Shown here: in pieces, positions 1 to 15,692 of the stretch
Numbering within the stretch: position 1 is the first letter of the stretch
How the letters are laid out: each line of letters opens with the position of its first letter
Assembly (NCBI GenBank): GCA_964035545.1
Contig: CAXIUT010000273.1
Span: 1 to 15,692, forward strand
Reading direction: 5' to 3'
Length of the DNA stretch: 15,692 nucleotides
Origin: Bugula neritina
Lineage: Eukaryota; Animalia; Bryozoa
Translations under genes and position numbers: made by a program
The notes under the pieces: generated by a model
Seen by the model: only the letters and a program-made list of their open reading frames with translations
Told to the model about the DNA's origin: nothing
The model's database searches: none

Positions 1-81
1 CCCAACCCCAACCCCAACCCCAACCCCAACCCCAACCCCAACCCCAACCCCAACCCCAACCCCAACCCCAACCCCAACCCC
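1..81. repeat. Left telomere, (CCCCAA)n
   Basis: Perfect C4A2 tandem repeat from base 1 to 81; this is the Tetrahymena-type ciliate telomere repeat. Confidence 0.99.
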
Positions 82-189: not shown

Positions 190-1628
190 TCAGTTTTATT
201 TACTTTCTGCTGGCTTGACAAATTTACTAGCTCTAAGACCATGAAGACCATTAAGCAAACTATTACCAAACCCACTTATCTTGCTGCTTCCTACTGACCC
301 TACAGTCTAAGTATGTCCTGTAAGTATATTATCTTTCCCTAATTTAAAAGTAACACAACTATCTCTCTGCAACTGCTTCTTCTCCTTCTTACGGATAGTG
401 TTAGAAGTAGTAAGAATTGGAGACTAGCCAACTGATACCTTATCTTTACTTTCCAAATCTTCTTATTCTTCTTACTTTTCACTATCGACTTATTCAGCAG
501 TTTCGTAATCTCCAAAATATGGATGACCTAGAGCTGCCTCTGCTGTAATTCTTTCTTCAGGATTTATTTTGAGCATTTTTTTCAAAAGATCCATAACTAT
601 CTTATCAACTTTTTAATATTCTTGACTTTCAAGTGAAAAGTTACAGCTTCTATTTTAATTAAGAACTTCTTTGTAGTTCTTTGCTTTAAAAACACTTTTT
701 CCAAAAAGAAGAGTATGGAAAATAAGTCCCAAACTAAACATATCACAAATAGGTTGATATTTTACTTTCATGTCTTTGATATTTATTACCTAAGGAGCTA
801 CATAACCAGGAGTTCCACATCTCACAAATAAATACTCATCAGCATTAGAAAACTAAGACAGACCATAATCTGCAATGACACACTCGTATTCTGTTTTATT
901 TCTGAAAAGGATATTCTCAGGTTTGAGATCTCGATGCATGATATTTTTTGAGTGCATTTCTTTTAAACCTTCAAGAAGACTCAGCATCATTGTTTTTATT
1001 TGTTCTGATTTAAATTTTTCTTTTGCCTACATAGATTAATATTTACCACAATTTTCTAATTGAGTTGGCCTCCATCTAGAAGTTAAAAAACAATATATAG
1101 AGAGTTATCTGACTAAAAAACCTAACAGAGTTTCATATTGTGTTTATTGTTAAGATGCCTCATAATATCTATTTCCTTTATTAAACATTCTTTTCCATTT
1201 TCCTCGCTATAAGCTGATTCCTTTGAAAAGGCTTTTACTGCATACTTCTCTTTAGTTTAGAGTTTTTATACCAGAAATACACTTGCAAAGTTTCCTTTTC
1301 CGATCTTCTTTATTGGTCTGAACTGTTCATGAAAGCCAAGTTGGTTGAGATGATTCTTCAAAACATTTCGAATCTACTTGAAATCTTACTTGATCAAGAT
1401 GAATGGATATTATTTGTCTTGATGATAAAATGTAAGTTTATCAGGATAGGCACTAAAGCGTAGGTCAAAGTGAAAAGGTATTGATATTTGTTTAAATTGG
1501 ATGACTTTGTCATAGATGCAAGCTTAGAAGGGTTCTTAGTTTTATTATAGTTTTAACATAGTTTTGAGTTGAAGAGTACCAGTTGGTTATTTCCAAGTAT
1601 CTAGCATTATACTTTCTTCTTTTTACAT
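190..1628 (-). CDS. Ser/Thr protein kinase (CAMK-like), ~472 aa, one 20-nt intron (1027-1046)
   Basis: With TAR=Glu: ATG at 1628, IGKGNFASV, YAVKAF, KEIDIMR, VFELLDGGQL, HRDLKPEN, IADYGLS, CGTPGYVAPEVIN, CDMFSLG, ERITAEAALGHPYF, TGA at 190-192. Removing the intron joins two frames without a gap. Confidence 0.96.
1027..1046 (-). other. 20-nt spliceosomal intron (gtaaatattaatctatgtag)
   Basis: GT-AG ends; removal restores the kinase frame between GGQLNEKIV and AKEKFKSEQIK. Confidence 0.9.
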
Positions 1629-1821
1629 TTCTTCTATTCTATAATTATCAATAGCAATAAAAAAAAACCTTAATAAGAATAAATATAATCTATTTCAATC
1701 AGAAACTTGTTATTTAGTTATTTGAGAGATAAATGAGATAAAAATTTGAGTCTTATTGATTTTTTAATTTATATCTTTAGGTATAGATATTTTTAACTAT
1801 AATTAATCCACATAATTACAA

Positions 1822-2450
1822 ATGAAATATGGAATGCTGCTCTTATTAACATTTCTACCCTTAGTTATCTCAATAAAAATGACTCTTTATTTAAGTATGG
1901 AATAAGGACATCAATGTTTTTACTAGTACTTGCGTACCTATTGCTTTACAAAGAAAAGGGATAAAAATATTCATTAAAGGCCAAATCTTATACCCATCAA
2001 AAACATAAAATATAAATCTTTAGACAAGATGATAACGAATGGAAATAAATCTACAACAAAAAATCACCTACAACCATGGAAAATATCAATAAAATAGCTT
2101 AAGAACATGCAACACATATGTTTTGTATCTCCAATACTGAAGAAGGAGTCTTAAAAGTTTCAATCTAAATACTCAATGGATTATCTCTTGGAGGCTTCGA
2201 AGAACTACCTTCAAAAGATGATAGTCTTAACATAGATCAACAAGTTGGTTGGCTTGATAGTCAAAAACAAAAACTAGTCACAGTGATGAATAGAATGGAA
2301 GGAAACAATTCATAAAGATAAAATTTAAAATCTTCTTCAAGCAAAACAATGCTATTTTTAGGTCTGCTAGGATTGACAGCTATTTTGTTGATTAATTGGT
2401 TGTTTTTTAATCGAGCAAAAAAAACTTTAAAAGACAGAAAACTCATTTGA
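1822..2450 (+). CDS. p24/emp24/gp25L (TMED, GOLD-domain) family cargo receptor, ~202 aa, one 20-nt intron (1934-1953)
   Basis: Signal peptide MKYGMLLLLTFLPLVIS, GOLD cysteines QCFYEYL and HMFCISN, a helical linker, TM segment MLFLGLLGLTAILLINWLFF and a basic tail KKTLKDRKLI-TGA typical of p24 proteins. Confidence 0.85.
1934..1953 (+). other. 20-nt intron (gtacctattgctttacaaag)
   Basis: GT-AG ends; needed to join the signal peptide/CFYEYL exon to the downstream p24 frame. Confidence 0.88.
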
Positions 2451-2558
2451 CTGATTGTTAGTATTAAATATCAATTTAAAAATTATAGTTATTTTATATC
2501 TTTGAGTCAGTATTTGATAAAGTTAATTCGAATTTCAAGTTATAATGATCTTCTATTT

Positions 2559-3563
2559 ATGAAAAAAAAAATCAAATCAACTAAATTTTTAAATCCTCTC
2601 CTCTCAAATAAACTCCAGCACAAATAAAGCAATCAGCAATCATTAATAAACACTAATCTTTAAAATAAATCATCTTCTATTGCTTTCAGCATCTTGGAAG
2701 AAATCTTGGATCAAACTTGTATTGAGATTTTTTAACACTAGGAATCCTATTAATCAGTTTTAGACATTAATTCAACTATGAATTCTATTTAGCGTTATTT
2801 TAATCAAATAAATGATATGAACTGTGAAGAAGATGGAGAATATTAGTGTGAACTATAGCCTGAAACAGTAACTAATATCTACAATATTTCTTCAGTTGAT
2901 AAAAAATCTAATATATTTATCACAAAACTCTTTCAAAATTCATAATCAAAGTCAAAGAAGTAAATAAAATAAAAGTCTCATAGCTATCAATAAAAAGAAA
3001 TATATATTCAAAGACATAGAATAAAAAGAGAGAATATTAGATATACATACAGAAATTAACTAGTTCCTCTTTAAATAAAAGAAAGAAAAAGTTAAGATTA
3101 TAGTTAAAGTATTGTAGAACTTATTAAAAGAAAAAAATAACTTAGAAATTTCAGTAATAAAGAATAAAAAATTGATACTTATTAACCTAAAATAAATAAA
3201 ATAAACAAAAAATAACAAAAATACTTCTATCAAAATGATTAAGGTAAAGCCACTTAACTTTCAATTCGAAAAAACAGTGATAAAATAAATGGAAGTTGGA
3301 TAGATATCAAATAAATAGGAGAACCTCTTCTTGAAGGTCTAAAAAAGAAACCTATTATTTAATATGCTTCTCTAAAAAGTAGGAAGAAAAAGAGAAGAAA
3401 TATTGAAGCGGGATAAACTTGTATTTTGATAGAAAAGATAAAATAAATCTAATAAAAATAGAATAATCTATTAATGAGTACATTAGTAAAAAATGGAATA
3501 ACTCTGAACCTAAAACAATAATTTTCATAGAACAAAAATTTTAAACTACCAACTGTCAGATGA
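2559..3563 (+). CDS. Hypothetical K/E/N-rich protein, ~334 aa, intronless
   Basis: ATG at 2559 followed by 334 codons with no in-frame TGA until 3561-3563. Contains a basic cluster KSRKKKRR (possible NLS). No domain recognised. Confidence 0.7.
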
Positions 3564-4107
3564 TTATGAACAAACTCTAAATGATTTCAAATTTATTATC
3601 TTTTATTCAGTATTTTAGCCCTATTTTCATCTTGAAAATTAATTTGATTGTCAAAACAATATATTTTTGTGATCTATGGTAAAATTTTATAATTTTCAAA
3701 CACTACTAAATCTTAAAAACTATGTTAAAATTGATAATTAGCTCATTTTTAGCACAAATTCATTGATAATATAATCAATATTTTTTTACCATCATGCATA
3801 AACATCTTCATTAATGCAAAACTATATTTTTAGACTTAAAACACTAAATAATTCTACTATTATATTTTTAAAAAACTATTTACCTGAAAAGCTTTGAGAT
3901 TTAAGGTAGAATTAATATATCTTATGATAGTTTCAGAAATATATGATAATAAAAATAGCTTAGACTATTATAAAAAGAGAACTTCATCTCACAATATCAA
4001 CTTCTAACAGAAGAGGACTCTAGATAAGTTGAATTATATATGCGACAAGTATAGAAATTCAAATTTAAGAATATTGATTATATTCTTTATCGTAATATTT
4101 TAAGAGC

Positions 4108-4788
4108 ATGAACATAGAGTCCACAACTTAAAACACCCGCACCTTCTATCTCCAAAGAATCACCCAATAAGATAAAGCACCTTTCATAACAGTCGACTTC
4201 TCCTCACCACCCCTAAACTCCAACCATAACTCATCATCCGCTGATCAATCTCTCCTCAAGTCTAATCTTCCCATCTTTAATGGAGATCTCAACCACTATA
4301 CTCCTGCCTTTGTTCTGGGAATAGATCAAGTAAACCATTTATAATTTAGGAGAAATGCAAAGCCAATACGAACGGCTATTTGAAAGCCCATTAAATGAAG
4401 CATGAATAGCTTTCAATAGAAAAATAATAATTGGTAAGTATGAGATAATATAGTTAGTGCCTCGACCGTCTAAAAGTGGTAGTTATTGCTGCATCTGCCG
4501 GACTAGCTATGATGACTATTTAACAGTAAAATATTCTTAATAAAGCATTTAAATGTACCAACTCATCAACTTCAACTCAAATCATCTCCCTTTGCTCAAG
4601 ATATTGCCAACTTCTGTCGAATTTTCAATCAAGAGGAATTGACTTCGAGTGGAGAAAAATATAAAAAACATGGAAAAAAAATCCAAAAGGAAAAAATCAG
4701 AAGAAAAAGAGGAAAAGTCGACTCTCAACTAAATTCTAGCTCAACCAAACTCTAGTCTTTAAATGGAACAAAATAAACTCTTATTTGA
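4108..4788 (+). CDS. Dbf4-type (zf-DBF) zinc-finger protein, ~206 aa, three 20-nt introns; 5' end may extend upstream
   Basis: After removing 4330-4349, 4434-4453 and 4526-4545 it reads KSGSYCCICRTSYDDYLTHLNVPTHQL (C-x2-C-x9-H-x5-H), resembling Dbf4 motif C. TGA at 4786-4788. Confidence 0.78.
4330..4349 (+). other. 20-nt intron (gtaaaccatttataatttag)
   Basis: GT-AG ends; restores the frame in the zf-DBF gene. Confidence 0.82.
4434..4453 (+). other. 20-nt intron (gtaagtatgagataatatag)
   Basis: Canonical GTAAGT donor and TAG acceptor; restores the frame. Confidence 0.87.
4526..4545 (+). other. 20-nt intron (gtaaaatattcttaataaag)
   Basis: Removal joins the Cys half and His half of the zinc finger (YDDYLT|HLNVPTH). 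Confidence 0.9.
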
Positions 4789-4921
4789 TATGTATATACA
4801 TCTTAAATAAATAAAACTTAGAAGAAAAGAATAAAAACTGCTAGTTAATCCGAAATTATCATATTAAAAATATCTTTTTTAGATAATATCTGTTATTTTT
4901 AAATCAGAGAAAAGGAAATAA

Positions 4922-5550
4922 TCATTTTTGCACATATTCTACAACAATATGTCCAATTACTTGTCCTTTTCGAACAACATCCATTAAATTGCTATTATTA
5001 ATAAAAACAACTCCTTCTTAATGTTGTCCCTTGATCTTAATCTTCATATTTCTAGGCACTACTATTTCCATCTTCCGTAGCTGATGTAGTGAATTCTCAA
5101 CGATCAGTCGCTTCTTTCGATGTTCCAAAGCATAAATACTAAAACAGTCATCAGGATTAGACTAGCTAGATTGAGTCAAATTGATATCAAAGAGTTTAAG
5201 AACTATTCTTTGCTTTTGTTTATGATAATGTTAATGTTGATATTGTTTTGATGATTCATACTAACTCTAGTATTGTTTAAGAGGAATGCTGCTGTTCATG
5301 TGGACTAGTTTTGATAGAAGTCGGCAGTTTTACTTTTAGATTGTGAATTTACGAAGGATTCTTTGGGAAGAAGTATGTCCTCTGGGTGAGGTATTAATGG
5401 ACTTTTATTTAGATTCTAGATAAAAAAAGGAGTACTCCGGTTGGACTGGAAGATGGTTGTAACTTAGTTATTTTTTCTATGACCCTGACGAATATTTCCT
5501 ATCTTTTTAAGATGTCTAAGGTAGTTTATTTTCGACTAATATTCTTCCAT
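4922..5550 (-). CDS. Hypothetical protein, ~202 aa, one 20-nt intron (5333-5352)
   Basis: ATG at 5550 (MEEYESKINYLRHLKKI...). The unspliced frame hits TGA shortly after 5333; splicing opens it to TGA at 4922-4924. ENCRLLSKLVHM...KQYESEY is weakly reminiscent of CFAP97/KIAA1430-type repeats (unverified). Confidence 0.75.
5333..5352 (-). other. 20-nt intron (gtaaattcacaatctaaaag)
   Basis: GT-AG ends; restores the frame. It is the only one of the eight without A at position 15. Confidence 0.75.
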
Positions 5551-5781
5551 CAAAGGAACTTAACCTTTATATATATTTAATTTTAAATTTTACCATTCAA
5601 TACCGACTATCATAAAATAACTGATTAAAACCTAATATGAATTCTACTTCTTTCTATCTATTCGATTAATCGCTAAATAATATTTTACCTCCCAATTTTA
5701 TAATTATCATTATTTGACCTTAAAAATATACTTAACAAAGATAATATAATGATAAATATTGATAATGATATGGATGATGAA

Positions 5782-8700
5782 TCATGCTGAACAAATTCCT
5801 TCCTTATTGCTCGTTCCAGGAGGACAAGTATTCACACAAGCCTCATTTGTTCTTGGACCAGGGCAACTCATATAGCAGAATCTGTTTCGATAATAGTTGT
5901 TCTCAGGACATGATCTGAAACATTGAGAACCAGCTGAGAATGTACCAATAGGACAACTACTTACACAACTTCTATTGTACTGGAATTGATTAGAAGAACA
6001 ACTAGTAGAAGGAATACATACTCCATTATTTGCCTCAAATCCTGTGTTACAAACAATACAGAAAGATGCACTGAAACAACTGATACAATTAGCTGAACAA
6101 TCCTTGCAATGTCTGCTCAAGACATCAGGATAAGTAGTACTAGGGCAAGCTCCAACACAATTGTTGTTTGAGATAAATTGATTCGAGTTACAAACAAGAC
6201 CTGTAGGTCTTTCTGATTGAGATTGTCTGATACATCCTCCAAAAGGACTAGGAGTATAACCATTGAAGCATCCTCCATAGATGCAAATTCCTTCATAGAA
6301 GAAGAATCCTGGGTCACAGATGTTGACACAAACTCCATTACTAAAATCTTGACCATAGGGACAGTTTTATCTAATTAACACATCTTTTATTATTCACGTC
6401 AATAGAATATCCAGAAATACATTTTGTGCAGCTATTCACATTTCCTGAACATTCAGCACAATTTGAGTTACAAGGTTGACAACTGCCATCAACTGTAGTA
6501 AATCCAGAACCGCAAGTTGTCACACATTGACCTGCTGAAACTATTCCAGAAGAACATTGACAAACTCCATTGACTGGTCTTGCTCCTACTGGGCATGAGT
6601 GTTGGCATTTTCCTTGGAAATAGTAAAATCCACTTAAACAAGAAGTACAGGCTCCTGAACCGTCACAAGTTGAACATGGATAGGGACAATCAGCACAGAC
6701 TCCTCCTCTTGGAGTGATATTGGTATTTTTACATGAGGTGCAGAAACTGAAAGAAGAGCAAGTTTTGCAACTAGAACTGCATGTTACACATCTCTTTTGA
6801 CCAGCATCAAAGAATTGATGAGTAAGACATCCTTTCTGACAAATAGAGCCAGTTCTCACATATCCTTAGGCACATTCAATACAGCTTTGAGGGTTGAATT
6901 TACATCCATAACAACTACTTGAACAAGCAACACAAAAACCTTGGAATGAAAAAGAATTTTCTTCACAAGCAGGAGTACAGGTACCGTCAACACCAACTGA
7001 TCCATGAAGGCAAGAGGTACAATTGTTAGGTCCTCCTTCACAAGTAGTACATTGAATGGAACAAGGAGCACATTCAGTGACTGAAACTTTGTAGAAAGCA
7101 TCAGGGCAGGTATCTACACATGAAGCGTTTCTTCCAACAAGTTGAAGAGAAATAGCAGGGCATTGGGCCCAACATCCTCCTTAGTAGAGAACTTGACCAG
7201 CTGGGCATGAGATACAGTTAGTAGCTGATCCAATACAAGTAGCACATCTAAAATCACAAACTTGGCATGCTCCTTTTTAGGCATAAGTTCCATCAACACA
7301 TTTTAAGACACAACTTTGACGATCAAAGGAAGTTTGAAGATATCCGAATCCATTAAGACAACTGGTACAGTATGAAGGATGATTGATACAAGTTTTGCAT
7401 GGTTAATTACAAGAAGAGCAGACCCAATTTCCAGTTGATCGATCACCGATAGTTCCAGCTGGGCACACACTGTAGCAATTTCCTTTATAACTGAAGAAAC
7501 CATCTTTACAATAGTAGCAAATTCTATTTTGAGTACATCTGAGACAACCTTCAGAGCATCCCACACAAACAGATCCTACGGGAGTAAATCCATCATTGCA
7601 AGATGTTTGACAAACTGTTCCCTGAAGAAGGAGTGGGTTCAAACAACTAGTACAGTTAGTTGCTGAAGTACATTTTTGACATCCATTAGGACAAGGAAGA
7701 CAATCTCCATTAGAACTGACAAAGTTTCTAGTTGAACAAATACATTTATTATCAGCTGTTTTAGTGTAGGATGTCTTGCAAGTAGTACAAGTATTTGCAT
7801 CAATACAAGCATCACAGTTAATTCCACAAGCAGCGCAATATCTAACATCATTGGGTGATACTGTGAAGTATGTTTGACTAGGACAGGTGCATGATCCATT
7901 GGTGTTAGGAGTAGCAAAAGCAACACATGATGAACAGGCAGTTGCAGATGTGCAAATACCACAACCCAAAGAACAAGCTACACAGGTGTTGTTTGCATCA
8001 GCATAGTATCCTGGTTTGCAGACGCAAATGCTTTCTGGAAGTTTGATGACTCTGTTTTTGGAGGCAAGGCATTTCACACAGAGTTTTAATCCTTGTTAAC
8101 ATTCAGAGCAGAAAGGATCAGCGTTACAGTTAGATTGAACGCATGAGCCATCAGCTGTTGAGTAGTATCCTGGTTGACATTTACAAGTTTGTTGTCCATT
8201 TTGATCAACTCCAGCAATTCTATTTTTGGTAATATCACATGAAGTACAAAGAGCTGGGGAAGTGGCGCAAGTCTTGCATTCTGGGTTACATTTTTAACAT
8301 GTTCTGGTTAGGTTGGTGTGATAAAGCTAATAATATCCATCCATACAAGTACAAATTGTTCCATTCAACATTCTGTTAAGAGTAGAATTGCAACTAGTAC
8401 AGGCTGAAGCATTAGTGCAAGTTAAACATGTTTGAGAACAAGTTGAACAGTTGACAGCTCCAGTATCAAAGTATCCAGTGATACAATCACAATTTTGACT
8501 AAGATCTCTTCGAAGAGGATCGACACAAGCTGTGCAAGTTGCTGCTGGTGAGCTACAATTTTGACATTGAGTGGGACATTGTTGACAAGTGGTACCATTG
8601 ATAAAGTAACCATTGCCACAAGTGCATGTCAAACTAACATTATCATGATTAGCTCCAGTCATACAAGTGGTACATTTAGCTGGGTCGCTTGGCTCACAAA

Positions 8701-10636
8701 TAGAACAGTAAAGAGCACTACAAGGGAAGCATTGGAATGTTTTGCCAGTATCAAGATAAAATCCACTGATACAAGTACAACTACCATTGTTAGCATTGTA
8801 TGCGAGACCAGCTTTAGTGTCACAGACAACGCATTTAGGAGGATTAATTGATACATCGAGACCAGTACCAGTAGGACAAGTAGTAGGACAACATCCAGTT
8901 GTTGGATCATATGCTGCAGCGTATTGGTATAAACGAAGGAAAGTCCAGAAGCTTTGGTCTACAGCTGTTGATCTAACGTATGAGATAGTAATGACAGCAA
9001 CTGCAGTGGTAGATCCAGCATTGATTCCTTTGAAAATATCAGTTACTGAAGTTCCACCTGCAGCAGTAGGAGTATAATTAATTTAATAAAGAACGAAGCC
9101 ATCAACTTCAAGTTTGATTTTATATTATGTATTGGCTACCATTGTTCCGGTTCCTCCTCCAATAGCTCCTATATTATCAAGGTATCCAAAATGGAACTTG
9201 AGAGGAGCTCCAGCAGTTAATCCAACGAATGGTATTTAAACTTTGAAGAGGATAGTATCATTATTTCCATTATTAGCACCAAAATACATGAAGTTGAAGG
9301 TATTTGATATTCCAGGAATAGTGATTGGAGCTGAGCTATCTTCAAGGATATATTGTTGATCTGATTTAGTAGGCACAGTGAAATAATCTTTTTTTCCAAC
9401 TTGAGTCATTTCAGTTTAAAAGCCAGATGGAGTTCTACATAAATGATCAATATTCACTGTAAAGATATCAGCTACAAAGAAGACATCAGTTGGGTTGCTG
9501 TTAGGAGTTGTAACTGTGAATTGATTGATGCTATCAAGAGTAGCGTTGATAGAAATAGTAGAGCATGTGGTATTAGAGTTTTGTGGAAGTTGAAATCTAG
9601 TTATTCCATAGATAGCGTATCTGGTGTCAGGAAGGACATAGTGTAGTTGATTGAAGTCAGAAGCAACAGTTCCTCTATTAATGGGAATTCCTTCATTGAA
9701 TTTAGTTACAGAAGTGTAGACATAGCTAGAAGAATAAAGCAAAAGTGAGCCTGCAGGATATGTACCGGCTGTAATTAAGTTAGAATCCATTCTTGAAATT
9801 ACAAATGCAACTTTTATATACTCAATAGCAGTATTAGGATTATAGATAGATACCTGAGGTCCTGAAGGTGTAGCTGCAGTGGTCACAGGAACAGCCTTTT
9901 CATCTGTTGCTGGAACTGGAGGCAAATTAGGTAAAACTCCAGCAGATAAATACTCTGCAGTAGTTTTGGCTGTATTCCATCTAAAACCCATTATATATGC
10001 GTGAATTATATTTTAACCACTTCCACCATTCGTTGTATTTGTAGCTGCAGCACCAGAATCTGGACAATTTGCATTGAATGCATAGTTAGGATCAGAATAA
10101 ATTAAGCAATTACTAGCAGGTGGAGCAGTTTGATAGGCTGCTCCAACAGAGTCAATAGCTGCTAATCCAGCAGCAGGATTGTTTACTTCAGCTACTGTAG
10201 CCCATATATCAGAATAAGTTCCACTAAGAAATCTTGATACAACAATGTAGGTAAAGGTCACTTTAGTCCATTGAGTGATAGAACCATCAGAAGGGTTTCT
10301 GAAGTTGACAACGATTCTCATTCTTGTGTTTTGATTTTCAAAGGCAACCTTATCAATGATCAATGTATAGAAACTATTCGTGCATCCAGTTTAAAATCCA
10401 CTTAAAGCAAATCCATAACCGAGGACATCCACTGTATCAAAAGCATTAATAGTCAGGTCCTGATAGAAATCTTTATTTGCTCCATTGTTGTATGTATCCA
10501 AGGGGTTTAGATGGATTACCCCTGTGCCCAATTTATTGATCAGAGATGAACTTTGACAAGTTGGGTCGAGAGAGACTTGGCCTAGAACTGTAAGGAATAG
10601 AGCCAGGCAGACAAGAAGTACTTTACTTGACATCAT
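5782..10636 (-). CDS. Large secreted cysteine-rich protein (furin-like / growth-factor-receptor CxxC repeats), ~1617 aa, with a +1 frame discontinuity at ~6365-6368
   Basis: Signal peptide MMSSKVLLVCLALFLTVLG, then a ~580-aa Cys-poor beta-rich region, then ~1030 aa of CxxC repeats. ORF-track pieces 10391-10705, 10013-10363, 9416-9991, 8327-8662, 7403-8077 and 6371-6859 share one frame and are separated only by TAA/TAG. The last ~195 codons are in the +1 frame and end in TGA at 5782-5784. No TM or GPI signal. Confidence 0.9.
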
Positions 10637-11095
10637 GATATTTATTATGATAGTTAACAAACCACTTCTGATTTGAAGAAAAATATAATCAGCGGACAGA
10701 ACCAACCACTATCAACACTCACAAAGGCAACCAAAAACCCTTTAAGTTCTTTAATATTTATTTAAGAACTCAAAGACTATCCAAATAAGGTTATCAAAAG
10801 TATCATCATCGATTATCTTATCCATCTGGATCATTGATAATTTCATAAATTGCTATCAGATGATAAAGATTAATGTAAAAGAAGAAGAAAATATTCTAAT
10901 TATCATCCTCAAAGAAACAATTCAATGTAAAATATTCAATAAAAGCACTTTTTCTTTGCAAAATGTTTAAAAGCAAATAGATAAAAAAGTTATAGAAAGA
11001 ATACAGAAGTAGTGCCAAGAAGAGTATAAAGTGATTGATCTTAATTACTAATCTTGATTTAATACTCATTTACATTTAGTAATAATTCTTTTAAA

Positions 11096-11836
11096 TCAAT
11101 AAAATATTTTAACTGGAAACTTGCCCTTTTACCTATCAACCCTCATTTTTAACATTTCAACTTTCTGCTAAAGCTGTCCAATAGTACACATCTTAGATTA
11201 CTATCTATCGAATTGAACTTGATAGTTTTTCGTCTTTGAGTTTTACTAGAGTAGGCGCACAAGACTATTATTAACCTGAAGCAATCTGTTATATTCCTAC
11301 ATTGATATATTTTGCGAATTGTTTACAGATCTTTATTGATGGCTATTTGATACATTTATTAGTGATGGGTATTTTTTCTCTTTATTGGTTTTATTCCTTC
11401 TTGAACTGATTTAAGGACGTTTTATTATCCATTGATTTTGAGGATAAATCGTATTTTCACTATTTCTAGAAGTAAATTATGTTTTCTTTTGTGAAAACAT
11501 AACTGAATCGCTCTTTTTTGAGGTGTTTTGAGACTCATTTCTATGATAATATGGCACAATATTTTCTTGATATTTTTTTTGCCAAGAGTTTGCCAATTAA
11601 TGAGGTTAAGATTTTACTTTTTTCAACTTAAACTATGACTTACTTTCTTTCCATTGTTACTTTTTATTATTGAGATGCTGGTTATTATCATTAACTCTTA
11701 ATCTATATTAATTTTAAAACGAAGGAAGTTTGTTAAGTTGTTGCTGAGCCTAAAAGAGAGGTAGTTCAAGTTACTGATCTTTTTACTTTTAAAGGAGACA
11801 GATAGAATGAGTGCATAACTTTTAGAACATTGACAT
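11096..11836 (-). CDS. Hypothetical protein, ~246 aa, intronless
   Basis: ATG at 11836 (MSMFEKLCTHSICLLEKEKDQELELPLF...), open to TGA at 11096-11098. Short C-terminal coiled-coil-like segment (IGQLEQKVEMLKMRVDREK). Confidence 0.68.
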
Positions 11837-11997
11837 AGAGTATATTTTTAATTTGAAAATTATCGATAACTTTATTATCATTCTTTTTCTCATATTTCAT
11901 CTCTTATTAATCTTCTTTTTAATTTTATTTGAATAAATTTAAAAGTCATAAGCTATGCAAAGATGATATACTATCCATAGAAATAGAAGAATAATAA

Positions 11998-12474
11998 ATG
12001 ACATACATACTAACATAGGAAGATATAAACTTCTGTCACAGAACTATTTAAGATCTAGATGACTAAGGTAGTGGTCAGATCAATGTGTATGACCTTTAAA
12101 CCTCTCTCCAACGAATGGACATTCACTTTGAATAATTCGAGTTATGCAAACTAATCTCTGAACTTGACTCCAATAACACAGGCTTCATCCAGTTTCAACA
12201 AATATTGGAAATCTATCAAAAAAAGCGTCAAATGGAAGTCTACGGATAAAATGATGAGGTCACCCTTGATGCATATACAGCAGTAGGAGGACCATCAGAT
12301 AAATCAGGACACATCGATGCAGAAGTACTAGTAAAGATCATAAAGGAATAATTTCAGTTGCCAATTGATATCGAATAACTGATTCGGTCAGTGGATGATT
12401 CAGGAAATGGATAAATAGAGTATTAGTAATTCTAGAAAATGCTCAAAGATAGAGGAGAGTTCAAAATTAAGTGA
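11998..12474 (+). CDS. Calmodulin-superfamily EF-hand protein resembling outer-arm dynein light chain LC4 (18 kDa), 158 aa
   Basis: EF loops DDEGSGQINVYD, DSNNTGFIQFQQ and DDSGNGEIEYEE. The segment TLDAYTAVGGPSDKSGHIDAEVLVKIIKEEF matches the LC4-type TLDAFVALGG..DK.G motif as I recall it. Confidence 0.85.
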
Positions 12475-12687
12475 TAAATTATATCATTTCATTTTAAAAT
12501 TATCCATTTCGATCAATTTCAGAATCACTATGAATTTCATAAAATATTCATTTGAATATATTTGAAATATTGGCTCTATTTGTAGAGCAATGATCAGAAG
12601 TATTATGATTTAGAAGTTTATTTTTATTTTATTTCTGATAGGCGATGATTAGTAAATTTATTGATGGGTTTGACTTTAATAATAAAA

Positions 12688-14284
12688 ATGATTTCGAGCT
12701 CGAATCTTCCTTTTTAGCCTTCTGATTATTTCTCTTCCTTTGAAAATTTAGAACACCTACGAGGCTCTATTAATAATCTAGTTGAAAGAGACCTTGTTGA
12801 TCTTGAATCCCTTCTGCAATCAGTTCAATAAACTCTCACTTTTTAGTCTGATGGACAAGATATCAACATAGAGGTCAAAAGAAAGGAAATCGAACTTGAC
12901 CTTTTTAAACATCTTTCAGAACAGAATAGATAGAGGTCTGAGCACCTCACAGGTTTAGCACATCTGACAGGTAGCTACCCTTATATTCAGTAACAATGAT
13001 AGATTTTATCGAGGAATCAAAACATAAACAAAGTGAGTATTTTGAAAGTTATGAGAGATAACTCGATTCCCTTAAATATACTATTGAAGAGCTGAGACAT
13101 AGCAAGTCAAACATAGAAGTATTGAAACGGTAATATAGAATGATGTCGAAGTTTTCAGGGATCAACTTGAAAGAGCCAGATAAGAGATAGATGTACTTGT
13201 AGATGAAAAGTAAAATTAAAATTAAGACCAATAGAATCAAAGAGAAAAGTAATGGAAAGATTGGAAAATACAATAATTATAAAATTAGTTAGAAGGACTA
13301 AAAGGAAAATTGAATTTTTATAAAATTCATGTCCAAAGTAAAAGAAAGTTTTAACCATAAACTAATCAAAAAATGATGAGAATCGTAAGAAGTGATTCAA
13401 ACTTTTTCAATAAAAAAATCAACTCAACAAAAGAGTCTCAAGATGAACAAAGAGATTCTTTAGATCATTATATTTACGTTAATAAATCTCTTTGTTAAGA
13501 AGTGAAATATCTTCGAAAACAACTTTAATTACTCTAAAGAGGTCAGAGAAGCCTCTAATAACTTAACTTTTCCTCTTAAAAGCAAATAAAATTTCTCACA
13601 GAAAATGACAAATCTTCAGAGGAATAATTATAAAACAATCAAATAGTTTCTTATAGATCAAGAGAGAAAGAAGCCCTAGCTCAAACACTAAGATTACTAA
13701 AATCAGAACATTCACTTTCATCTCTCATCAGTAGAGATCCTTCTAGAAATATGTTACATACTTAATCTTTTATTAATGAAGAGGTAATTAAGAAAAGTCT
13801 TTGCAGAGATTGGAGTTGTATTTCAAATGGTTTTGATCTTGTTCCTTAAAATTTAAGAGAAAAAGACAACAAAATCATTTATCTTAGCGATTAAGAAGGT
13901 TCTTTGATTGGAGATACTTCTAGAATTAATCTTGATTGTTTTTAAAAGAATCTAGAAACGGTAGCTTAAACCAAAGAGTCAGACTGGTCAGTTAATAATA
14001 CCGAAAGACATATGGTTAGTACTATTAGAGTAAGATCTAACATGGACTATGTTAATTATATGTTGAAATAAAGTGAAAAGAAGAAGCAAAAAACAATATT
14101 CAGGAAGGTAAAAAGATCATTTTTCGATTAGATATCAGCGAACTTTAAAGTTGAATCAAAGGTGACTGAAAAGAACAAGAATCAAAAGAAAGGTGTAATT
14201 GATAATTTATTTGGATGGGTAGTAAATAATCGTGTCAGACGTACATCTCAAAAGGCAAATAGTGGTTCTTCTTTGTTAGTTTGA
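12688..14284 (+). CDS. Coiled-coil hypothetical protein, ~518 aa, two 20-nt introns (12971-12990, 13119-13138); alternative in-frame ATG at 12664
   Basis: Three open frames are joined by two GT-AG 20-mers. Heptad-rich stretches include YERELDSLKYTIEELRH, FRDQLERAREEIDVL and IQELENELEGLKGKL. TGA at 14282-14284. Confidence 0.8.
12971..12990 (+). other. 20-nt intron (gtagctacccttatattcag)
   Basis: GT-AG ends; the unspliced frame reaches TGA within a few codons. Confidence 0.83.
13119..13138 (+). other. 20-nt intron (gtattgaaacggtaatatag)
   Basis: GT-AG ends; switches into the long terminal frame that runs to 14284. Confidence 0.83.
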
Positions 14285-14436
14285 TTTTATTTGTAATAAT
14301 TAATGCATATTATAACTGCCTTATTAAATATATAAAATATTATTGCATTCATATGTCAAAAAATTAACTTTTGTGTCCCTATTTATCATCTAAATCAAAT
14401 CAAAATCATTTTTATGAAGTTTTTTAATAGTAAATA

Positions 14437-14469
14437 ATGCTACTTTAATGCTATTTTGATGCTACTTTA
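14437..14469 (+). repeat. 3 x 11-bp tandem repeat (atgctacttta / atgctattttg / atgctacttta)
   Basis: Read directly from the sequence in the intergenic region upstream of the Myb gene. Confidence 0.8.
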
Positions 14470-14602
14470 GTCAAAGTAGTCGTTCTTATTAAGCTTTCGA
14501 AATACTATCTTCTTCAAGTTAAGATACTACTTTATCTGAGTTATTTTAAATGAGAAGAGTTTTTATTTGAAACTGTTATTTTTTATTTCTCAATATTATT
14601 TC

Positions 14603-15541
14603 ATGTTCTGGCCTGATTTTATAATTTTTTAAGAGAAAATCAGCAATAAAGATTAATTCATCAAGAAAATAAGATATTATTGCTTATAATTGAAGCGCCA
14701 AGTTGATGACTATAAAAGACAACACTATTTTGATGAATTATAACCAATGATTTAGTAGAGTTAATTCCAAGGACTACCGCCTCTAAAGAACTAAAAAGAC
14801 TTCTTCTTATTCGAACCACACTACAACCAAGAAGAAGAACATAAAATCTCTCAATCACCTATCCCAACCAGCTCTTTCTCTTCTCCCATACTGTCTAAAA
14901 AGATGAATAGGAAGGTTTCAACTGATTCTCCTAGGCCTAGAAAGAGTAAAGTAACTGAGCCTCAAAATCCTAATCAGAAGTTCGGACATTGGATGTTGTA
15001 AGAAAACAAAAGATATCATTGGTTTCTTGAAATACATCATAACCATTTTTTAAACAAACATTTGAGAAGAATGGATAAAATCTTCAAAACAATGGCTTTG
15101 TTTGTTAATTCAAGAGAAGCTTAACAATGTAGAAGTCACCATCAAAAAATGGAAAAGAAGTATCACTCTATCTGTAGGATCCTCCTCAGTCTCAGAAATC
15201 AACACTATCAGACCGAAGATTCACAGCCAATAGTCGAAGAACTCAATGAGCAAGCAATTGTCTTTAATGATGGAATTTTAGAAGCTAAATTTCTCCATAA
15301 AGGTGCATAGAACGAAGAAGAACTCTACAAAAAATAACAATAATTCGAAATGAAAGAATAAAATAAATCAGGAGAAGACGAATTTGTTATGAAATAGAGC
15401 TAGATAAAGAAAGATTAAGTTCCAAAAGTAGAGTGTGGATAATTGACTCTCTTTCCTTTAAATCCAGAGTACTAAGGAATGGATATAATGGATGAATTGT
15501 TGGCAGATTAAGCTCCCCATAATTACTTCCAGTTGATCTGA
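14603..15541 (+). CDS. Myb/SANT-like DNA-binding protein (SHAQKYF-related, ciliate type), ~312 aa; alternative start at 14747
   Basis: KFGHWMLEENKRYHWFL...KIFKTMALFVNSREAEQCRSHHQKMEKKY is a single Myb repeat. Acidic C-terminus; TGA at 15539-15541. Confidence 0.88.
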
Positions 15542-15605: not shown

Positions 15606-15692
15606 GGGGTTGGGGTTGGGGTTGGGGTTGGGGTTGGGGTTGGGGTTGGGGTTGGGGTTGGGGTTGGGGTTGGGGTTGGGGTTGGGGTTGGG
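15606..15692. repeat. Right telomere, (GGGGTT)n
   Basis: Perfect G4T2 repeat to the end of the window, inverted relative to the left telomere. Confidence 0.99.

Follow-up and report, generated by a model that had tools for sequence, protein, structure and literature searches.

Evidence for a peritrich-type genetic code, with UAA and UAG read as glutamate, on a ciliate mini-chromosome co-sequenced with the bryozoan Bugula neritina

NCBI table 30 is the genetic code that reads UAA and UAG (together UAR) as glutamate (Glu) and stops at UGA alone. This code was first found in Vorticella and Opisthonecta, as reported by PMC4695839 in its citation of Sanchez-Silva et al. 2003, and later in Carchesium and Campanella (PMC4967479, PMC10553269). 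Among ciliates, reviews to December 2024 describe UAR as Glu for the Peritrichia only (PMC10553269, PMC11687900, PMC4695839), and a single origin of this meaning in ciliates has been inferred (PMC10553269, PMC11687900). Here we analyse a stretch of 15,692 nucleotides, the window, which is the entire contig C282 of the 216-Mb assembly of the bryozoan Bugula neritina. We hold with high confidence that the window is an entire somatic (macronuclear) mini-chromosome from a ciliate co-sequenced with its bryozoan host, and that this ciliate uses the peritrich-type code with UAA and UAG as Glu and UGA as the sole stop. This code is already described, for peritrich ciliates, and is not new.

At the level of the code we found no difference between the table 30 peritrichs and this ciliate. 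They share TAA and TAG as Glu, TGA as the sole stop, dedicated suppressor tRNAs and a macronuclear genome setting; the tRNA(UUA) was not found in this partial assembly. The code of table 6 (ciliate, dasycladacean and Hexamita) likewise gives TAA and TAG a sense meaning, keeps TGA as the only stop and involves suppressor tRNAs and an altered release factor eRF1, but its amino acid is glutamine (Gln), whereas it is Glu in this ciliate. Oligohymenophorea sp. PL0344 (PMC10553269) has in common with this ciliate TAG as Glu through a tRNA(CUA), TGA as the only stop and, judged by telomere type, the ciliate class; TAA, however, is lysine (Lys) in PL0344 and Glu here. Blastocrithidia (table 31; PMC12153298) also reads UAR as Glu, but it is a trypanosomatid in which UGA encodes tryptophan and UAA doubles as a stop, whereas in this ciliate coding alignments contain no UGA, which serves to end genes.

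The window begins and ends in telomere repeats:

1 to 81, plus strand: telomere (CCCCAA)n, read from the sequence; the repeat is common to hundreds of the small contigs of the assembly
15606 to 15692, plus strand: telomere (GGGGTT)n, read from the sequence

Since C4A2 and G4T2 telomeres are present at both ends, the window represents a complete ciliate macronuclear chromosome. A scan of the assembly found about 300 small contigs with the telomere repeat of the window, and the ribosomal DNA (rDNA), tubulins and tRNAs of the animal host are carried by the large contigs C1 to C9.

Within the window, the meaning of TAA and TAG was examined in two genes on the minus strand:

190 to 1560, minus strand: CaMK-like protein kinase gene; exon 2 at 193 to 1026, exon 1 from 1047 to about 1560 with the start codon not fixed; stop TGA at 190 to 192
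1027 to 1046, minus strand: kinase intron of 20 nucleotides (GTAAAT...TAG) that joins the two kinase frames, placed by frame and homology
5782 to 10636, minus strand: gene for a large secreted cysteine-rich protein of about 1,610 amino acids; stop TGA at 5782 to 5784

Gene pieces and exons were searched separately, and TAA, TAG and TGA were masked as X in local analyses. The Pfam Pkinase family matched four separate stop-free pieces of the kinase gene in the correct order, and kinases from the PDB matched as well. When spliced, the kinase reads ...GGQLN-x-KIV / AKEKFKSEQ..., which is colinear with kinase subdomains V-VI. Its in-frame TAG codons lie at 790-792, 853-855, 1113-1115 and 1122-1124, and its in-frame TAA codons include 1083-1085, 463-465 and 472-474, among others. 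An earlier note on the window had assigned several of these codons to Glu sites of the kinase, and every codon coordinate that it named for the window is correct and in frame. The plus-strand CTA at 790-792 is a minus-strand TAG that directly follows GTPGYVAP, at the Glu of the APE motif. TAG at 1122-1124 and 1113-1115 (x) and TAA at 1083-1085 (z) were located in KLC-x-VF-x-SDNSLYIVF-z-LL, and the run of Glu residues SEK-z-EE-z-EDLE contains the TAA codons at 463-465 and 472-474.

We took 21 kinase paralogs from the other ciliate contigs of the same assembly and aligned them with TAA and TAG masked. The APE Glu column contained GAA or GAG (GAR) in 12 paralogs, TAA in 8 and TAG in 1, and nothing else. 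Similarly, the columns of VF-x-SDN and of the hinge, IVF-z-LL, held Glu or TAA/TAG (TAR) with single exceptions. We then compared amino acids by likelihood within the window, using the substitution profiles of the kinase and of the cysteine-rich protein, the latter against a 66%-identical environmental ortholog. Glu was the best amino acid for TAA, ahead of Gln by 33.7 and of Lys by 37.7 nats, and also for TAG, ahead of threonine by 41.4 and of Gln by 45.0 nats. In relatives, TAR was found opposite window Glu at a rate of 12.5%, against 1.9% opposite Lys, 2.3% opposite tyrosine (Tyr) and 2.4% over all residues taken together. Over about 2,500 confidently framed codons of the window the Glu content is 3.6% when GAR alone is counted and 5.8% when GAR and TAR are counted together.

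The cysteine-rich gene contains 13 TAA, 4 TAG and no TGA in frame. An open frame of 1,465 codons (6317-10711, minus strand) has 17 TAA or TAG codons and no TGA (P = 1.4e-15, calculated from the six-frame TGA rate of the window, 2.3% per codon). The protein has 38 environmental homologs, and the ortholog on a contig of ENA ERZ3602259 is 66% identical over 1,440 amino acids. The ortholog on this contig (GC 51%) has two TAG codons opposite a window histidine and a window Gln and one TAA opposite Glu, a small sample.

Other contigs of the same organism gave the same result. With the tubulin genes of the host as the standard-code reference, the ciliate alpha-tubulins (contigs C87 and C16) contain 17 in-frame TAA or TAG codons opposite host Glu, for example in FFS-x-TGAGK, VID-z-VRTG, LLM-z-RLSVDYGKK and HWYVG-z-GME-z-G-z-F. 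In four ciliate tubulin genes 29 of the 50 TAR codons are opposite host Glu (TAA at 23 of 39 sites, nearly all conserved ones, and TAG at 6 of 11). None is opposite Gln, Lys or Tyr, the residues that the earlier note had named as evidence against Glu. In an all-against-all model of the paralogs, whose pairs are not independent, Glu was again best for both codons and Gln was worse by 542 nats for TAA and by 302 nats for TAG. As judged from these alignment columns, TAA and TAG are both Glu codons in this ciliate.

We also observed that tubulin genes differ in their use of TAR. All 37 Glu codons of the beta-tubulin at C10:811-2133 are GAA or GAG, with TAA and TAG unused, while the alpha-tubulins (C87 and C16) use 6 and 14 TAR codons within their coding sequence. 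Such a contrast may come from expression-related codon bias, or from a mixture of ciliate genotypes in the assembly. A search of the protein collection for this exact beta-tubulin sequence gave no match.

The alignments bear directly on the common ciliate code of table 6, under which TAA and TAG would both be Gln. Gln is the commonest ciliate reassignment and has been inferred to be ancestral in Oligohymenophorea (PMC10553269); it is also the runner-up model for TAA, and a few TAR codons stand opposite Gln at variable sites. However, the tubulin codons that align with Glu, invariant Glu included, have no counterpart opposite Gln, the APE column is restricted to GAR and TAR, and Gln is 34-542 nats worse than Glu, so that a table 6 code has practically no chance of being correct. 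The split code of PL0344, in which TAA would be Lys and TAG Glu, comes from the same ciliate class and also has UGA as its sole stop (PMC10553269), and in the noisy paralog alignments only one residue faces TAA more often than Lys. Yet in alpha-tubulin about 15 conserved host Glu residues have TAA opposite them and no Lys does, TAA fills the APE Glu column in 8 paralogs, and Lys is 38-746 nats worse for TAA. The match to table 30 that the earlier note had proposed therefore holds, with table 6 and the split Lys/Glu code excluded by alignment columns and likelihoods.

TGA was not found as a sense codon. In the known coding frames of 25 ciliate kinase and tubulin genes, 5,303 aligned codons included 133 TAA, 53 TAG and no TGA; the UGA to tryptophan change of the Blastocrithidia code (table 31) was not seen, as there is no in-frame TGA in aligned coding sequence. 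All five modelled genes of the window end at TGA, and three ciliate tubulin genes end at TGA at their natural acidic C-terminus. The proposal that TAA and TAG are Glu and TGA is the sole stop is thus upheld both in the window alone and on the other contigs of the organism.

One of the alpha-tubulins ends ...ETVD-TAA-TGA, and the EF-hand gene of the window, described below, ends in TGA-TAA, where a terminal TAA could act as a stop. A code of the ambiguous or context-dependent kind known from Condylostoma and Blastocrithidia would have TAA and TAG as Glu inside genes and also as stops near 3' ends, or TGA sometimes as sense. Against such a code, TGA stands where the C-terminus is expected in the five window genes and in three tubulin genes, no TGA occurs in the aligned codons, and TAR codons are spread along whole genes, the vicinity of the 3' end included. 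We consider this code very improbable, although the TAA directly before TGA in the one tubulin leaves a slight chance that TAA serves both purposes at 3' ends.

The earlier note had suggested a search for tRNAs that read the two codons, and one of the two anticodons was found. Pattern scans detected two ciliate tRNA(CUA) genes, at C10:16787-16858 and C256:3981-4052, each followed by a T-run (RNA polymerase III), and a canonical ciliate tRNA-Glu(UUC) is located on C54. The UUA anticodon was recovered in environmental relatives. Metagenome contigs that share the anticodon-loop and T-arm pattern yielded 77 loci, with 59 CUA and 22 UUA tRNAs, most on one scaffold. The C10 tRNA(CUA) is 97% identical to the commonest metagenome CUA form, and identity between the UUA and CUA forms is 88%. 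As UUA and CUA tRNAs lie on one scaffold in these relatives, the clade has both decoders. The loci came from many freshwater and other metagenomes, and a few are suppressor-type tRNAs in bacterial or phage style, unrelated to the rest.

The earlier note had also suggested a look at eRF1, and that of the ciliate, on C314 (17700-18500), is divergent in its N-terminal domain. Against human eRF1 it aligns over residues 8-46, where its GTS loop lacks one residue, and over residues 116-136, where YxCxxxF is kept as YNCDSRF. The NIKS motif of other eukaryotes, whose position we take from what is established for eRF1, is replaced by QIKD, and the piece of 24 amino acids around it found no match in the PDB. 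Its coding sequence also contains four in-frame TAG or TAA codons at what are presumably human Glu positions, the TAG sites being DF-x-PFKP and RLRM-x-KRHNY. Environmental eRF1 orthologs whose frames are interrupted by TAR and bounded by TGA have QIKD or NIKD in common.

These components suggest how the code could operate. The tRNA(UUA), which we detected in environmental relatives alone, on the shared tRNA scaffold, would read UAA and, by wobble, UAG, and glutamyl-tRNA synthetase would charge both suppressor tRNAs. The altered eRF1, with QIKD for NIKS and a shortened GTS loop, would no longer recognise UAR, leaving termination at UGA only. By analogy with other ciliates (PMC10553269), the eRF1 changes would limit recognition to UGA.

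Several observations weigh against the reading of both codons as Glu. At poorly conserved sites TAR stands opposite many different residues. No tRNA(UUA) was found in the assembly by six anticodon-directed pattern scans and a search with a covariance model trained on the CUA tRNAs together with the host tRNA-Glu; this absence is weak evidence because the ciliate part of the assembly has very few tRNA genes. One TAA of the eRF1 gene is opposite what we take to be a human Gln. Finally, the suppressor tRNAs are 0.56-0.72 identical to every host isotype, with Lys nominally the highest, and so are not marked as Glu-type, while in a control the ciliate tRNA-Glu(UUC) clearly picks host Glu (identities 0.82 and 0.77). 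Their Glu/Asp-like parts are confined to the acceptor stem (UCC..GGA), the D-arm (GGTTAGGA) and a variable loop of 4 nucleotides. The amino acid is established by codon alignments and not by tRNA sequence. The best raw identity of the suppressor tRNA, to host tRNA-Lys, is a further point in favour of the split code; however, the UUA and CUA tRNAs of the relatives occur on one scaffold, closely similar in sequence and not Lys-like and Glu-like respectively, and together with the alignments this leaves that code hardly any probability. We retain Glu for both codons.

Candidates for a tRNA(UUA) that the searches returned were chance matches, and every one retrieved failed ARAGORN. Two copies of an AT-rich tRNA-like gene with a six-base anticodon loop, whose anticodon ARAGORN did not name, lie at C73:6060-6260 and 17630-17830 and may be mitochondrial. 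On the host chromosomes C1 to C8, two dispersed repeat families were matched by the tRNA-like patterns, one with about 80 near-identical copies and the other with about 20.

We infer that the organism is a peritrich from its telomeres, intron length and ecology, which fit this identity and do not prove it. The C4A2 telomeres are of the Tetrahymena type, as in Oligohymenophorea. Narrow intron-length distributions have been reported for peritrichs (PMC13685798), and the very short introns of one length found here, and life as an epibiont on a marine colonial bryozoan, are consistent with such a ciliate. Ciliate rDNA, which would show peritrich identity directly, is absent from the assembly: an Rfam search for small-subunit (SSU) rRNA, scans with two patterns of conserved sites and a BLAST search started from the host 18S recovered only host copies and an organelle-like contig, C214. 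At C214:38000-47999 this 65-kb contig carries SSU and large-subunit rRNA genes of bacterial type, matched with low scores. It has 13 or more tRNA genes, mainly in the interval that separates the rRNA genes, and resembles the organelle genome of another cobiont, not a ciliate nuclear contig.

Homologs of the cysteine-rich protein and of eRF1 were traced to the samples SRR27710286, SRR30398004, SRR23848403, SRR6041131, SRR21722006, SRR11607848, SRR6470667, SRR6470659, SRR12686997, SRR28369001, ERR3534961 and ERR14064740, and to several ERZ assemblies and GCA_041445565.1. The table of peritrich runs in the supplement of PMC12411067 contains none of the 12 run accessions; most of the samples are unlabelled metagenomes, so this result is uninformative.

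If the ciliate were not a peritrich, UAR as Glu would have arisen a second time, independently, with a fast-evolving tRNA family as decoder whose body is not simply a copy of tRNA-Glu. The lack of ciliate SSU rDNA in the assembly, the lack of a peritrich label on any of the 12 samples with close homologs, and suppressor tRNAs that are not plainly derived from tRNA-Glu would all be in keeping with such an origin. On the other hand, the C4A2 telomeres, the short introns of one length and the marine bryozoan habitat fit a sessile peritrich, the literature infers a single origin of UAR as Glu in ciliates, and the unlabelled metagenome samples say nothing either way. We regard an independent origin as unlikely, and favour a peritrich.

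The remaining genes of the window lie on the plus strand:

1822 to 2450, plus strand: p24/emp24-like cargo receptor gene, its family assigned by motif and architecture only; stop TGA at 2448 to 2450
1934 to 1953, plus strand: intron of the p24-like gene, 20 nucleotides (GTACCT..AAG), placed by frame and homology
11998 to 12474, plus strand: EF-hand calcium-binding protein gene; Pfam EF-hand_1 matches the piece at 12136 to 12246; stop TGA at 12472 to 12474, followed by TAA
14795 to 15541, plus strand: 3' part of a SANT/Myb-like (SHAQKYF-type) gene, its motif read by eye; stop TGA at 15539 to 15541

The predicted p24-like product combines a signal peptide and a CFY-TAG motif with a transmembrane helix and short tail at its C-terminus. 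The TAG at 1924-1926 follows GHQCFY, as the earlier note had described. Both introns placed in the window, in the kinase gene and in the p24-like gene, are exactly 20 nucleotides long. Pfam gave no match for the pieces of the p24-like gene or for the Myb piece of 40 amino acids, which are too short. In the last EF-hand of the EF-hand protein, TAA at 12427-12429 is indeed loop position 12, within DDSGNG-z-IEY-x-z-F; an ordinary Gln occupies this position in another EF-hand of the protein, so that the site is weak when taken alone. The Myb-like gene has TAA at 14999-15001 directly after GHWML, in GHWML-z-ENKRYHWFL. Here the codon stands as first described, while the W-x-x-E-E spacing claimed for it is only approximate, and this site too is weak alone.

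The cysteine-rich protein is predicted to have a signal peptide, an N-terminal domain of unknown type and furin-like cysteine repeats. Its gene shows a +1 change of reading frame inside ATAAAAC at 6367-6373 (minus strand). The ERZ3602259 ortholog is colinear here and has four residues between CV and CPYG, and the window therefore has one extra A at the frame change. The extra A is either a homopolymer error of the assembly or a +1 ribosomal frameshift site. A 22-nucleotide GT..AG splice at 6341-6362 would keep the frame, and was rejected as it removes a segment that is conserved in the ortholog.

Knowledge of the code itself is unchanged by these data, and their main value is practical. The standard code or the usual ciliate code breaks up or mistranslates every gene on the window and on about 300 sister contigs, and contaminant screens of the host assembly should mark these contigs as a table 30 ciliate. 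The data add a long-read sample of the genome of a ciliate with UAR as Glu, with complete telomere-to-telomere chromosomes. The two tRNA(CUA) genes, the QIKD eRF1 and the environmental set of UUA and CUA tRNAs could serve studies of the mechanism of reassignment.

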